Shown in pieces: positions 123 through 36,300 of a stretch of 64,000 nucleotides of DNA. Source of the DNA: Bugula neritina (taxonomy: Eukaryota > Animalia > Bryozoa); assembly GCA_964035545.1 (NCBI GenBank), contig OZ037769.1, positions 682,001 to 746,000 on the forward strand, given 5' to 3'. Under the pieces are notes generated by a model. That model worked only from the letters and a program-made list of their open reading frames with translations, had not been told where the DNA came from and made no database searches. Position numbers and translations under genes: made by a program. The stretch's first letter is position 1; every line of letters begins with the position of its first letter.

Positions 123-3100
123 ATGGTAAGTAATTCATTTCATTGATGCATGTGTTACGGTCTTTGGAATAAAATTTTGAACATTTGCTATGTTAAAACC
201 TAGGAATTTGCAAAATTTTAAGGAATAAAAAGTACTTAGTTTGATAAGGAACCTGCTTTCAAGTTAATGGAATAATTTTGTTAACTATTTTCAATTCGAT
301 CTACACAGCTGTAATCAATTTTTTTAATTGTTAAACACAATTTGAAAATGTTACCTTTGTATAAAAGCAACATGTATTTTATTTCATAAAAGTTGAAGCA
401 ATAATAAAATTGTGTCGTTACTTTTATATATTGAATGATTGCTCATGGTTACTCTTAATATTAAAAAGATTGCTTGGCTAGAAAGTTGCATATAGGAGGA
501 AATTTTAGTTTGAAGAGACGTGATAATCCTAAATATTTATCACATTGTAGATAGTTAGTCTGCAGCTTGTACTGCTGAGTATATACACAGTCATGTTGAT
601 AGAAGGACAACATATTAAACCAGTGAATATATGTGATAATAATACAGTGACAGTTGATAGAGGATATGCAGGGATAATAGAACATAGAGAGATAGAGGGA
701 GCACCTGTTAGATGTAGTCTAACTCTGAGAGCACCTGCTGGTAGTTATATTAGTATATCAGGCTTAGGAAAAATATATGGAGGCAATAATGTTTGCCCAA
801 AGGTAAAAATAAATCATAGATCCTACTGCATCGATTCTACGAAACCTGGTATTGTACAAATGCTCAAGTCGGACAAAGCTTTTCTGACTGTCTCCACCAT
901 AAGCAGCAAAAATAATTTTACTCTTCATTTCTATAATACAGGTAAGAAAAACAGTTTCACATTAAATTGAAACTCGTCAAATTGAAAACAATGTTTTGTT
1001 CAGTAAGTATGCCTGCACATGTATAATATATGTACCTGTTGCAGTGACATCCTGTGATGAAGATATTCAGATACCAGACAGACCTAAAGTTGAACAGTTG
1101 ACTGGAATATTCACCAGCTCTTATAAGCTTCCTCTCTACGACACCTTCACCCTGTGCGAGTCTACAATAACAAACCTTCCACCTGAAGCTCACTATGTTA
1201 AATTTGATGTGATATTTGGGCCTCCGGAAACTGTAAAAATCGATTGGCAGTTTGGAGATGAGAAGCTAACTATCATCCCAACATCATTTCTAGTAGCTGC
1301 AAGAAATCAACAAGTAACAATGACATATGAAAGTGAGGTAGATGCGCTGACAGGAGAGGGAGAGATGGTGTCATTTGTCATCAGATTTCAAGGTCAGCAC
1401 CAGGTGTTGTACGAACTGTTGGGCAACATAGAGTGTAGCACACATTTGCATCTTTTCCTACCACCAATCTAATCATGTACTTGCAGACTCAGTTAAGATG
1501 CGTATTCATTTTGCCACTGTTGTAGTGAAAAATTAAAATAAGTTTAAAAGTTGCTTTGTTTGTCATACAGAGTGTGTGATCTCATACAGAGTATGTGATA
1601 TCATACAGAGTGTGTGATGTCATACAGAGTATGTGATGTCATACAGAGTGTGTGATGTCATATACTGGTTGTGATGTCATACAGAGTGTGTGATGTCATA
1701 TACTGGTTGTGATGTCATACAGAGTGTGTGATGTCATATACTGGTTGTGATGTCATACAGAGTGTGTGATGTCATACAGAGTATGTGCATGATGTCATAC
1801 AATTGGCAACATATTATACCCTTAATTAGCTGACACAGTGTAGCTTCCCTTAGTAAAAAGAGTTTTATGTATCTTTGAAGTTAATTACTGCATTACTGAA
1901 ATTTGTTGAGTTGTTCATTCTGCCAATGTATCAATTAAAAGAACTTTATTTTAAAAAATTGCAACATATGTTCTTTTTAGCTATGCAGTAAAGTTTATGA
2001 ACATAATAAGTTTTACAACTTTTTTGGTTTTAAACTGTTATAGCAGATTATGCACCACTTTTAGCAGTTGAACACATTTTTCACAGCACCATGTATAGCA
2101 GCTACAGTACGATAATGGTTTGTTCATTTTCTCTGTCAGTTCTGACATGTGGAGATAAACCTGAAATCGATCATGTGACAAGTACTCCATCTACTGAATC
2201 TCCCTGGTTTCCTGGTACAATAATAAACTATTCTTGTGAAAATACTGACTATCAGTTGAAGTATAACTCAACTTCTGAATGTAAAGTAGATGGTACAGAG
2301 GCTAAGTGGGTCAACCAATCAGAGATCAGATGTATTCCAGCTGGTATGTCTTCATAACATAAACCTGTATATAATGAGTATATCATAGGTATAGACTTTC
2401 TCTAATAACTGAGTATAATATTTTCAACATATTTTTTATAAGAATTGAAAGAGTTATAAAAGTGTCAAGTTGGTATTTTTCTACATAGTTTTGTTTAATT
2501 CATTAAATTATAAAATATTATAAAAAACATTAGGATTTCACTCGCCAATAAGGTTTTTATTAATTTTTAGCTTCAAACATGACAGACGGTGAGTTTACTA
2601 CTAAAAATAAGACTGATACTTATACAACAGTATATGAGTGTATAAAAGGATATGAGAGTAGAGATGGAATGGAAGAAGTTGTATCTAGATGTAGTTCTAC
2701 TGATACAGATAATATACCAAGTATGTAAATGTACTAAAACAAGCAAAATATACCAAACATTAACACACACCACAAACGAATATAGTTGAATGTATAGTAT
2801 ATTTGCATTTACCAGCATTTAGTATTAACACTAAAGTTTAGAAACACAGAGAGCAATGTTTTGCTCTCTGATAATTCTGTTCCATTAACTTAAATTAAAC
2901 TGAAATAAGTCTAGCTGTTGACTAATATAATAATAACTATTTAACTTTTTATGTAGATAGTTTCAATTAAATTTAGCTTAAATTGTTAAAACCTGCTTTA
3001 CAAAAAAATTGCAAACATATATACTATCTTCACACAAAAATAAATTACAATTTTTATTTGCCCAAAGCAAGAAAATTTTTGAACATTTTATTCCTAACAT

Positions 3101-33300: not shown

Positions 33301-36300
33301 AATTCTTTAATAATAACTTTAGTTGAGTGTGACATCACTGATCTCTCCATCAATAACTCCACTACTAACATCACATCTAAAGGAGGGACAACTCACACAT
33401 ATGTCTACCAAGAAGTTCTATCATATGACTGTTACTATGGTTACAAGAAAACAAACATGGATGTGATACAGTGTCAACATGATAAAACTTGGTCCAGTAT
33501 TCCAGAATGTACAGAAGCAGGTGATTATTTAGAGGTTTAAATTACTAGTATAATACAATTGTTCTATTTGCCTAAGTTTATTACTATTTCTTGTATATAA
33601 AAGAATAAACCAAACAAAAATTTCCTTTTTATTATTTTGCAATTAGTTTAATTTGTTTTGTGTCATATTTCCTATACTTTGTAATGTCTTTTACAACAGC
33701 TAAGTGTGACCCAGCAGCACTAAACCTATGTAACGGAGACATACAGACAGACATATATTACGGAGGAGATAATCTACTCTACTCATGTAATGATGGTTTT
33801 ACTAAGACTACAGATCCTGTCTGTACAGAGTCTGGTAACTGGTCACATGACCCTGGTTGTTTGTTGGTCAGAGATGGTAAAGTTTCTGCTTCTGGTTCTG
33901 GAACTACTGAAAGCACAAGAATGATTAGTTATCTAGCCCTGCAGTCTCAAAGGGGTAAGTGATGATGTTAAACCATAACACAGGCAATGTTACATAATTA
34001 TAATAATAAATGGTGGATAGAATTATTCGATCACTCCCTGCAGTAATATAATATTTATCATAAGATATTTTATTTGTCAGATAACAAAAAATTAATAAGA
34101 TAAATATGATTTTATTGATGTAATAGCTTATGACTTCGTCCAGAGCACTACTTGAAAACATAACTTCAAATCATACTCAGCGATAAATGACTTTGTTTAT
34201 TCACGTTACTAGGCAACAGTATACTAACTACTAATGTTAAATTTACAATGAGTCTGTCTGTCTGTCCTGCATCACTTTTGATATTTCATTCTATATATTT
34301 TTGATAGTTTAAAATCCCACTGTTGGAGCATACCTTTGCTAATTTTGAACTGCATTCTCTCAACTGTGAAATATTTGTGTATTCAGATAGTTTGATTGGA
34401 GTGGTGGTAGTTCTGGTACTAGCAGTGGTTACACTGAGTAGTATTATTCTCTACTTGAAAAGAAGTAGTCTGCCCTGTAGAGACACCCCATCTGATAAAC
34501 ATGAAGTATATGAAGAACCTATGTCTACTCGACCCTCAAACTCAGCAAATCCTCCCACCAACACTTACGAGCAGCTCACCACCTCTCCATCATCAGCATA
34601 TGAACAACTTCAACTGAACACAACAGTTCCTCTTTATGAGAACAGACAGGATATGACATCACCAGCCATTGAGATTTAGAACAGATGTTATATATTATAC
34701 CAGTAACTGCTTGCTCATGATGATTTGACATTTATTTTTACGGCTTAATCTTACAACTGAGCAACTTTACGTGCTTTTATTCAGTGTCTATTAAGTAATT
34801 TTCCAAGACGATATGAGGTTGTGTTCTCAAGTCAACCTTGCAAATTTATACATGTAGTTTAGAATGAAATATTTATTTTTTATTGCTAAAATGACATAAC
34901 CATTTGATTATACATAAGCATTACATTATTAATATATTGCTAAGAATGTGTGCACTGCATGCCACACCAATGATCATTTGTTATACATTTCTTTCATTTG
35001 ATTTATATTTTTTACAAATTGATCAACTAAAATGTTTGCGTAATATTTAGTTTACAGAGCAGAAGGTTTTTGTTTCATTTTAGAAATAGAGAGCTAGTAC
35101 AGAATTGGTGATATTTTGCTAGCAGCAACTTTGCAAATCAGCAACATGAATTTTTTAATAGAACACTCGTAACATATTTCTAAATAGAAATATGATAGGG
35201 AATATATTTTACAAAATAGCAAACATTTTAAATTGTAGTGCAACAAATTTTCATTATTTATTAAAACCAATAAATACACACTATATAATATTGCTTTGAG
35301 AATTGTATTGTAACTATAAGTGCCTTGTATTAATAACTATGTGCATGGGCTGGAATAAAGGTGTTCTTTGAAGTCCATATAACTGTGGGTTATCAGCCCA
35401 TTTTTCTACTAGCAATACTGATACATACTAAATGGCAACATTATAGTCTCAGCTCCACACCTCACAATAGCATGCTTAGGGGTCCTCATAACTACACAAC
35501 AACTAGTTATATTTCGCTAAACCTGTGAATAGCGCGAGTGCATAGTTACAAGCTGTTTGGGGAGCGGCTGAGTACCCACCCAGACTAGCCAAAGTTACAA
35601 CTCTTTGCTATATTATCATCTCAATTCATATACAGTTTCTACTTAACACATAAATAAGAATAAGAATTGGACTCTGCATGTTATATTATATAGTTTAGAC
35701 ATACAGTAGCTTTGCTCGATGGAGTTGTCTTCCTATAAGAGCTGTCAGTCTACAAGAGAGGATAATTCTCTTTACCCATTAATTAGGTTAGTGAGATATA
35801 ATATGTTATTATATAATAATAGTATATATAACATTACATATAATATATTATTATATATAATATTATATACAATAATATATATAATACTATATATATAATA
35901 CATTATATATAATTTTATACATAATATTATTATATATTACTATATATATAGTGTTATATATAATATTATTATATAATATTACATAATAATATTATATATA
36001 TTATTGTATAATGGTTTGTTTCATTTAGGTTTTCAGTATCAACGATTTCATCGAATACCTGTTTTCAGATATTGCATCTGTGAGTTATTAACTAAATTTG
36101 ACAGCATGAGATAGCTATAATATTGCAATGGCTATCTTTTAATTGTCAAAACTCAACACAGCATATCATGAAGTTGCTGAATCCCAAGGGAGAAAGCTGC
36201 ATTTACTCCTGCCAGCTGATTAAAGTTATTTTACAGAAGTGAACTTGCTGCCAAATGACAGTGATGCTATTTGTTGCGGATATGCAACTGCAAATGTTTG

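Follow-up and report, generated by a model that had tools for sequence, protein, structure and literature searches.

Why would a bryozoan keep a tandem array of receptor genes whose extracellular parts join CUB-type heads to stalks of complement control protein (CCP, or sushi) domains, and whose cytoplasmic tails differ widely from gene to gene? The question is raised by a stretch of 64,000 nucleotides (henceforth the window) of the Bugula neritina genome (chromosome 5:682,001-746,000 of the 216-Mb assembly tzBugNeri2.1; PMC11480708), in which an earlier reading of the letters alone (the sequence-only reading) had noticed seven such genes, R1 to R7, and had proposed them as an allorecognition or immune receptor complex. 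We found that they belong to a family of 22 clustered genes within 370 kb of chromosome 5, with one further member on chromosome 2. With moderate confidence, and judging from genomic comparisons, we favour the view that this is a lineage-specific family of germline variable immune-type receptors, built from CUB heads on a CCP spacer and from phosphotyrosine tails that can be exchanged, whose ligands would belong to microbes or parasites.

We rebuilt the genes by coordinates and ran all searches exon by exon, joining exons solely to check the reading frame and to count residues (see Table 1). All seven genes could be reconstructed on one strand and with a single exon plan, as had been claimed for them: a start exon, an exon for the leader and domain 1, an exon for domain 2, two to four CCP exons, and one exon for the transmembrane segment and tail. 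All introns run from GT to AG, the first exon (3-6 nt, with the ATG) ends in phase 0 and every domain exon in phase 1, and the frames are open.

Both N-terminal domains had been taken for CUB domains from their cysteines, and predicted structures point the same way. The Pfam CUB profile had no match in the exons of domain 1 or domain 2 (one of 14 aligned domain-2 sequences reached E 0.095), and sequence searches of the PDB with the two domains gave no match. The cysteine patterns are as described by the earlier reading, with four invariant cysteines in domain 1 and only the first pair in domain 2; the second disulfide pair is also lost in CUB2 of ADAMTS13 (PMC8051872). The predicted model of R7 domain 1 (predicted local distance difference test, pLDDT, 81) was most similar to the CUB domains of spermadhesin and TMPRSS6 (Foldseek E 8e-4; Z 8.1-8.2, root-mean-square deviation 2.7-2.8), with TSG-6, neuropilins, MASP and cubilin also found and the top ten matches all CUB proteins. 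For eight of its ten Atlas matches CUB is listed, either for most or all of the members or as a minor family; a ninth is of the astacin-CUB type. The model of R7 domain 2 (pLDDT 65) matched spermadhesin and MASP-2 (Foldseek E 7e-4; Z 8.2-8.6), with CUB ranked first. Judged by these predicted models, which superimpose on the jelly-roll beta-sandwich (about 110 residues) of solved CUB domains, domains 1 and 2 are atypical CUB-fold domains invisible to Pfam, and neither matches the Ig superfamily. In the calcium-binding subclass of CUB domains, acids in loops L5 and L9 bind the metal; read by eye, L9 of CUB1 has no conserved acid, and L9 of CUB2 is acidic but variable. The CCP run that had been placed after the CUB domains was recovered with the Pfam Sushi profile and the cysteine/tryptophan pattern (four cysteines and a conserved tryptophan in about 60 residues): six CCP exons reach or exceed the gathering threshold (E 8e-9 to 6e-4), a further two fall short of it, and the three without a match still carry the pattern.

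The sequence-only reading had also supposed that the cluster might run on upstream of the window, and this is the case: some 5 kb ahead of it there is one more gene, R0, and 14 others fall within the 370 kb. The clustered genes are arranged at 588-615 kb (n = 3, minus strand), 677-717 kb (n = 8, i.e., R0 and R1-R7) and 897-951 kb (n = 11, minus strand), all within 1 Mb of the chromosome start; profile searches of 746-890 kb gave no family exon. The total of 23 members was stable over profile and protein searches of the genome with increasingly diverse queries. Domain exons are open and splice sites kept in 21 of the 22 clustered copies, the damaged one (at 920 kb) having a frameshift in a CCP exon and a lost cysteine in domain 2. 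The chromosome 2 member (28.887-28.892 Mb) is distant, with a threonine-rich mucin-like insertion within CUB2 and five tail tyrosines; a small cysteine-rich gene of secreted type adjoins it.

A domain-2 profile searched against 1.84 billion representatives returned B. neritina fragments, one Watersipora subatra protein and divergent marine-metagenome exons, the species of which is unassigned. Four long matches of this search (P0013, P0019, P0023 and P0024) were unrelated repeat proteins and were dropped. True homologs with the same exon and domain order are Watersipora subatra XP_067929890/889 and B. neritina KAF6039007 (named 'CR2' at NCBI), and a metagenome fragment (P0010) is a counterpart of R4. 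The Watersipora homolog shares the architecture, has no second copy within 10 kb and differs from the Bugula proteins in its tail; as the domain-2 tree had no supported branch, it is not assignable as the ortholog of any given Bugula gene. A metagenome scan with the domain-1 alignment gave no match, and full-length homolog searches gave none for P0025 and only the query itself for P0015, blanks that are weak since the database often holds short exon fragments. At the search sensitivity used, the family thus appears confined to bryozoans and its expansion, as far as the data go, to Bugula, in line with the lineage-specific family that had been proposed. In the literature searched we found no paper describing it, nor any recognition receptor family reported from bryozoans; its database entries are labelled 'uncharacterized' or with the automatic name 'CR2', and the paper on the 2020 B. 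neritina genome goes no further than to note weak similarities to Alr1 (PMC7576161).

To compare the genes between genomes we used the 2020 B. neritina assembly and sequencing runs X1-X3 (genomic contigs). The 2020 assembly and related runs are 80-85% identical to our sequence across introns, which on this measure makes them a sibling lineage; the 2020 assembly and runs X2 and X3 were therefore rejected as a source of alleles and used as orthologs instead. Run X1 is heterozygous DNA carrying the window's haplotype. The order R0-R1-R2-R3 is kept in the sibling lineage with one-to-one orthologs, whose ratio of non-synonymous to synonymous substitution rates (dN/dS) is 0.09-0.56 per CUB exon (pooled 0.28 for CUB1, 0.18 for CUB2 and 0.25 for CCP) and 0.09-0.19 over the R2 ectodomain. 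Variation is low as well: R2 differs by 0-1 residues per CUB domain across four to five sibling-lineage data sets (not all independent), and one contig of run X1 spans most of CUB1 and all of CUB2 of R3 without differences. Among the exon variants listed for run X1 there are at least three amino-acid changes (at 7208, 7704 and 10387, read by eye). The earlier division into old divergent members (R2-R4) and young near-identical ones (R5-R7) can accordingly be restated as a two-tier repertoire, with R0-R3 one-to-one and under purifying selection. The sequence-only reading had named findings of this kind as evidence against itself; orthology of R0-R3 and a near-monomorphic R2 are among them, and the known non-recognition role that it also named has no counterpart, as no role is on record. 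Its range of two to four CCPs holds for the cluster but needs correcting in R1, whose middle CCP exon is a truncated remnant with two of the four cysteines beside two complete CCPs. The same truncation is present in the sibling lineage, and the two versions of the remnant differ by nine non-synonymous and no synonymous changes, so the exon may be skipped or relaxed. About 3 kb upstream of R0, the 2020 assembly has a 197-residue frame of imperfect repeats of some 37 residues, to which no clear counterpart aligned in the present assembly.

The young clade (n = 17, i.e., R5-R7 and both outer clusters) behaves differently from R0-R3. Synonymous divergence (dS) in the CUB exons is 0.10-0.14 between young paralogs versus 0.19-0.31 between lineage orthologs, and young CUB2 fragments of the sibling lineage, unlike R0-R3, have no one-to-one partner here (best 80-90%), which together indicates turnover or concerted evolution between the lineages. 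Diversification, as the sequence-only reading had it, is supported for the CUB exons by codon models: comparing M1a with M2a over the 17 young copies, twice the log-likelihood difference was 43.8 for CUB1, with omega 6.6 at 4% of sites, and 35.1 for CUB2, with omega 4.7 at 11%, and it remained at 31.1 and 33.0 without gap-adjacent columns. The same test on the first two CCP exons gave 0 and no positively selected class. The observed values also exceed the highest null values under simulated heavy recombination (20.9 for CUB1 and 9.3 for CUB2; 16 runs each). The variation is concentrated in loops L3, L5, L7 and L9, with diversity in odd versus even loops of 0.33 versus 0.15 (p=0.006) and 0.24 versus 0.05 (p<1e-4) in the two CUB domains. 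Odd-numbered loops lie at the ligand-site end of calcium-binding CUB domains (PMC8051872). Between R5 and R7 there are 14 residue differences in CUB1, flanked by introns that are 98-100% identical.

Heads and tails are also recombined. R7 is 95-100% identical to R5 from the promoter through intron 3 and 94-99% identical to R6 from intron 4 onwards into the 3' flank; the change-over lies in exon 4, which is the first CCP exon. This exon is 91-100% identical among the young copies, R0 and R1; for R0 and R1, identity is just 43-46% in CUB2, and in CUB1 it drops from 91-95% over the first half to 29-41% over the remainder. Given this homogeneity and the patchwork of R0 and R1, the first CCP exon is likely an exchange point through which a head can be joined to a different tail. 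At 897-951 kb, leaders and tails of different types take turns along the cluster in units of two or three genes. The duplicated block that yields R7 meets its source at a dispersed repeat (Table 1); a second, different dispersed repeat (19022-19280) lies upstream of R5 and not upstream of R7.

The tails fall into at least six classes: short tyrosine-free (R2-R5), R0/R1 type, R6/R7 type (YEEP, YEQL-x7-YEQL, YEN), longer (YEEM, SLYEKL, YEKL-x9-YEKL, YENI), truncated and multi-exon. The multi-exon tails belong to the three genes at 588-615 kb and carry three to four NxLY repeats and YEEAP, on a splicing model that is approximate. An Ig-like exon (weak Ig_3 match, E 0.02) lies on the minus strand just downstream of the 588-kb member and may belong to another receptor gene. 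The claim of very different tails stands, and tails have been swapped between copies, as in the R5-type head and R6-type tail of R7. Immunoreceptor tyrosine-based activation or inhibition motifs (ITAM or ITIM; searched as YxxL/I-x6-9-YxxL/I or [ILVS]xYxx[ILV]) are found within the window in R7 only, which has the full ITAM core (YxxL-x7-YxxL), R6 having a cysteine for the second tyrosine; outside the window they match in nine of the 11 genes at 897-951 kb and in one tail frame each of two 588-615 kb genes. Glutamate or aspartate directly follows 22 of 31 tail tyrosines versus a 14% background (one representative per class; the tails are not independent), and an acidic residue after tyrosine is the context of Src-type substrates and SH2 ligands. 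Tail tyrosines are kept between the Bugula lineages, as are the R1 PDZ-type C-terminal motif and the R2 stop codon; the tails of R2-R5 could nevertheless be longer through exons undetected at the DNA level. R5 and R7 have similar heads (87% and 92% amino-acid identity) but a tyrosine-free versus an ITAM-like tail, the motif itself not giving the sign of signalling.

In the immune-type design that we favour, the two CUB domains would form a variable binding head through loops L3, L5, L7 and L9, held away from the membrane by a glycosylated CCP stalk with a homogenised first CCP. Clustering by ligand would lead a Src-type kinase to phosphorylate the acidic tail tyrosines, which could then recruit Syk/Shark-type kinases (YxxL-x7-9-YxxL), SHP/SHIP (SxYxxL/I), PI3K (YxxM) or Grb2 (YxN), and short-tailed copies, R5 among them, might be decoys or co-receptors. 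As ligands we consider molecules on the surfaces of microbes, parasites or epibionts most likely, and these would be what drives the diversification.

Several observations weigh against this reading. Purifying selection, the best indication that R0-R3 are translated, is also the sole sign of translation in the family, and a search for RNA runs returned none. The codon models were our own M1a/M2a implementation with scaled nucleotide-tree branch lengths and 16 null replicates, whole-exon dN/dS is below 1 (0.72 and 0.80), and odd loops are the more divergent ones in CUB domains generally (PMC8051872). In the comparison of R7 with R5, synonymous change reaches the level of non-synonymous change (0.053 vs 0.063), a pattern that exon-limited gene conversion would explain equally well. 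The Z near 8 of domain 2 is only modestly above other beta-sandwiches, with near ties to non-CUB folds. As for signalling, no transmembrane segment has a charged residue, and the acidic residue expected upstream is missing from the ITAM cores, which also overlap with matches of ITIM type, so that activating and inhibitory classes are not assignable.

Much of the same evidence can be read as conspecific self/non-self recognition, with the young clade as a polymorphic, copy-number-variable identity code for sperm selection, larval kin recognition or colony contact. Selfing is extremely rare and cryptic mate choice has been proposed (PMC6802076); larval kin recognition with kin-biased settlement was reported (Keough 1984, cited in PMC10078279). 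The clustering, the ITAM/ITIM-like tails and the cassette-like alternation at 897-951 kb parallel the FF/FcoR pairs (PMC12582321) and Alr (PMC9546547), the best fold match is a sperm-coating CUB protein, spermadhesin, and the R5/R7 head differences amid near-identical introns would suit such a code. Yet fusion of colonies is reported not to occur in B. neritina (PMC10078279), R2 is almost invariant, the R3 CUB exons are almost homozygous in run X1 (few samples), and homology to Alr or fester goes no further than the common sushi domain, the heads not being Ig. We regard conspecific recognition as unlikely but not negligible. The non-fusing colonies, together with the purifying selection on R0-R3, the near-monomorphic R2 and the single full ITAM core of the window, also count against the allorecognition complex of the sequence-only reading, and graft-type self-recognition is the weaker interpretation of the locus.

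The remaining explanations would place the family outside recognition of foreign or conspecific tissue. A cell-adhesion or identity code inside the colony (for neural wiring, zooid boundaries, or placental or brood-chamber contact), comparable to SEZ6/CSMD, neuropilin or Dpr/DIP, would fit the one-to-one old members with their short basic tails, the R1 PDZ-type motif of both lineages and the nearest language-model look-alikes, which are SEZ6-like and CSMD clusters (score 0.88, a lead only); it is made improbable by the young clade, whose fast turnover and positive selection are unusual for developmental codes, and by the different tail of the sole Watersipora homolog found. Near-neutral amplification would have a complement-regulator-like or endocytic receptor multiplied by unequal crossing-over near a chromosome end, conversion mimicking hypervariability and YxxL serving as a sorting signal. 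The position in the first 1 Mb of chromosome 5, the clear conversion tracts, non-synonymous differences (pN) close to synonymous ones (pS) in recent pairs, the NCBI name 'CR2' and the frameshifted 920-kb copy speak for it, but the selection signal exceeds the recombination null and is absent from CCP exons undergoing the same conversion, nearly all copies keep open domain exons and splice sites, and the tail tyrosines keep their acidic context between lineages, which leaves this explanation very improbable in our judgement. It is harder still to believe that the assembly has set two haplotypes, R5+R6 and R7, one behind the other. The flanks of the R7 block do copy those of R5+R6 with only two occurrences in the genome, and their divergence (0-8%, 17% at one end) overlaps the allelic range of run X1; the window, however, has no gap, long reads would span the 200-bp junction repeat, and such an error would remove at most one of the 22 genes and would itself mean gene-content polymorphism.

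SEZ6/SEZ6L and CSMD1-3 are single-pass proteins with CUB and sushi domains, interleaved, low in copy number and conserved. The sequence-only reading had set the Bugula genes apart from such proteins, and rightly so: they have two atypical, Pfam-invisible CUB heads before the CCP run (CUB-CUB-CCPn) and are amplified in tandem, and instead of one-to-one bilaterian conservation we found bryozoan and marine-metagenome matches only. C1r, C1s and MASP share the CUB pair followed by CCPs and the fold match, but are secreted proteases with EGF and trypsin domains, absent from the Bugula family, and with a calcium-binding motif that the Bugula heads, judged by eye, appear to lack. Vertebrate paired receptors (KIR, LILR, SIRP, Siglec, CEACAM) use Ig or lectin folds, and their activating partners usually have a charged transmembrane residue. 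The Bugula family resembles them in near-identical heads with different tails (R5 vs R7), conversion between copies and selection on the distal domains, and differs in having no charged transmembrane residue. Botryllus Fester and its co-receptors are likewise clustered type I sushi receptors, with more than 20 members, ITIM/hemITAM-type tails, birth-and-death evolution with intergenic recombination and variation at the N-terminal domain; by contrast, they have Ig-like heads, are tied genetically and functionally to fusion/rejection and form head-to-head expressed pairs (PMC12582321). Hydractinia Alr also comprises, in one interval, many single-pass receptors beyond profile detection with diverse ITAM/ITIM tails, but its domains are V-set/I-set Ig and Fn3, its alleles number in the tens to hundreds and bind homophilically in an allele-specific way, and the animal is one that fuses (PMC9546547). 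The Bugula family would work like known clustered recognition receptors and belongs to none of them.

Elsewhere in the window, a minus-strand gene of several exons (40147-47800), which encodes ankyrin repeats as well as a Dpy-30 motif (E 6.5e-15), converges on the receptor cluster. Minisatellites occur in R1 intron 3 (1561-1801) and in the ankyrin gene (44962-45487), and a long TA run in the last intron of R1 (3466-3651). A candidate small three-exon gene lies on the minus strand at 49400-50700, its exons short and GC-richer, and a single plus-strand frame of 279 codons (56685-57524) has a coiled-coil N-terminal part and a remainder rich in serine, threonine and proline; the opposite strand has an open frame of the same length, and there was no significant Pfam match.

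Table 1 Receptor genes and related features of the window (positions within the window; TM, transmembrane segment).
Feature	Position	Strand	Residues	Exons	Remarks
R1	123-4314	+	547	123-125, 551-941 (signal peptide + CUB1), 1045-1392 (CUB2), 2140-2343 (CCP), 2571-2720 (truncated CCP), 3168-3371 (CCP), 3971-4314 (TM + tail)	90-residue tail with YEEP, YEEV and PDZ-type C-terminus; ortholog in sibling lineage, mosaic identity
R2	5635-9186	+	422	5635-5640, 6148-6535, 7041-7376, 7689-7892, 8056-8244, 9041-9186	old single-copy; two CCPs; 24-residue basic tail without Tyr
R3	10203-13208	+	419	10203-10205, 10302-10686, 10807-11148, 11723-11914, 12497-12682, 13057-13208	old single-copy; two CCPs; short basic tail; ortholog in sibling lineage
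R4	14755-18439	+	419	14755-14757, 15234-15624, 16212-16580, 17029-17229, 17397-17585, 18333-18439	old single-copy; two CCPs; 11-residue tail
R5	20070-22835	+	558	20070-20072, 20218-20608, 20770-21117, 21287-21487, 21579-21776, 21898-22095, 22259-22438, 22678-22835	young clade; four CCPs; 25-residue tail without Tyr
R6	24267-27487	+	606	24267-24269, 24419-24821, 24934-25281, 25467-25667, 25758-25955, 26145-26342, 26521-26697, 27195-27487	young clade; four CCPs; tail YEEP, one YEQL (second Tyr to Cys), YEN
R7	31429-34679	+	602	31429-31431, 31577-31967, 32128-32475, 32643-32843, 32936-33133, 33323-33520, 33700-33876, 34387-34679	young clade; chimera of R5-type 5' half and R6-type 3' half; tail YEEP, YEQL-x7-YEQL, YEN
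Hypervariable loop L5 of R7 CUB1	31787-31825	+			mature residues 51-63; four sites with posterior >0.9 for positive selection among the 17 young copies
Duplicated block	30300-37215				copy of 18573-30099 in which R5 has lost its 3' half and R6 its 5' half; yields R7
Dispersed repeat, about 200 bp	30099-30300				at the junction of the two blocks; elsewhere often two inverted copies spaced by 0.5-1.6 kb, resembling a DNA-transposon end

What the locus offers is a recurring design (i.e., a variable head, a spacer stalk and a swappable tyrosine tail) built here on CUB, the known cases using Ig, lectin, LRR or SRCR folds. The 17 young genes could also be a haplotype-variable, CUB-headed conspecific-recognition locus with swappable ITAM/ITIM tails, governing self-sterility or kin recognition in a non-fusing animal, a proposal that we consider quite unlikely; if true, it would be the first such locus to be molecularly defined in a bryozoan, and its kind would be new. 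The genes sit in a compact 370-kb locus of a species that can be crossed in the laboratory, in which self-sterility is known, larval kin recognition is reported and the bacterial symbiosis looks obligate, so that three long-standing questions become approachable at one locus by linkage, expression and binding.

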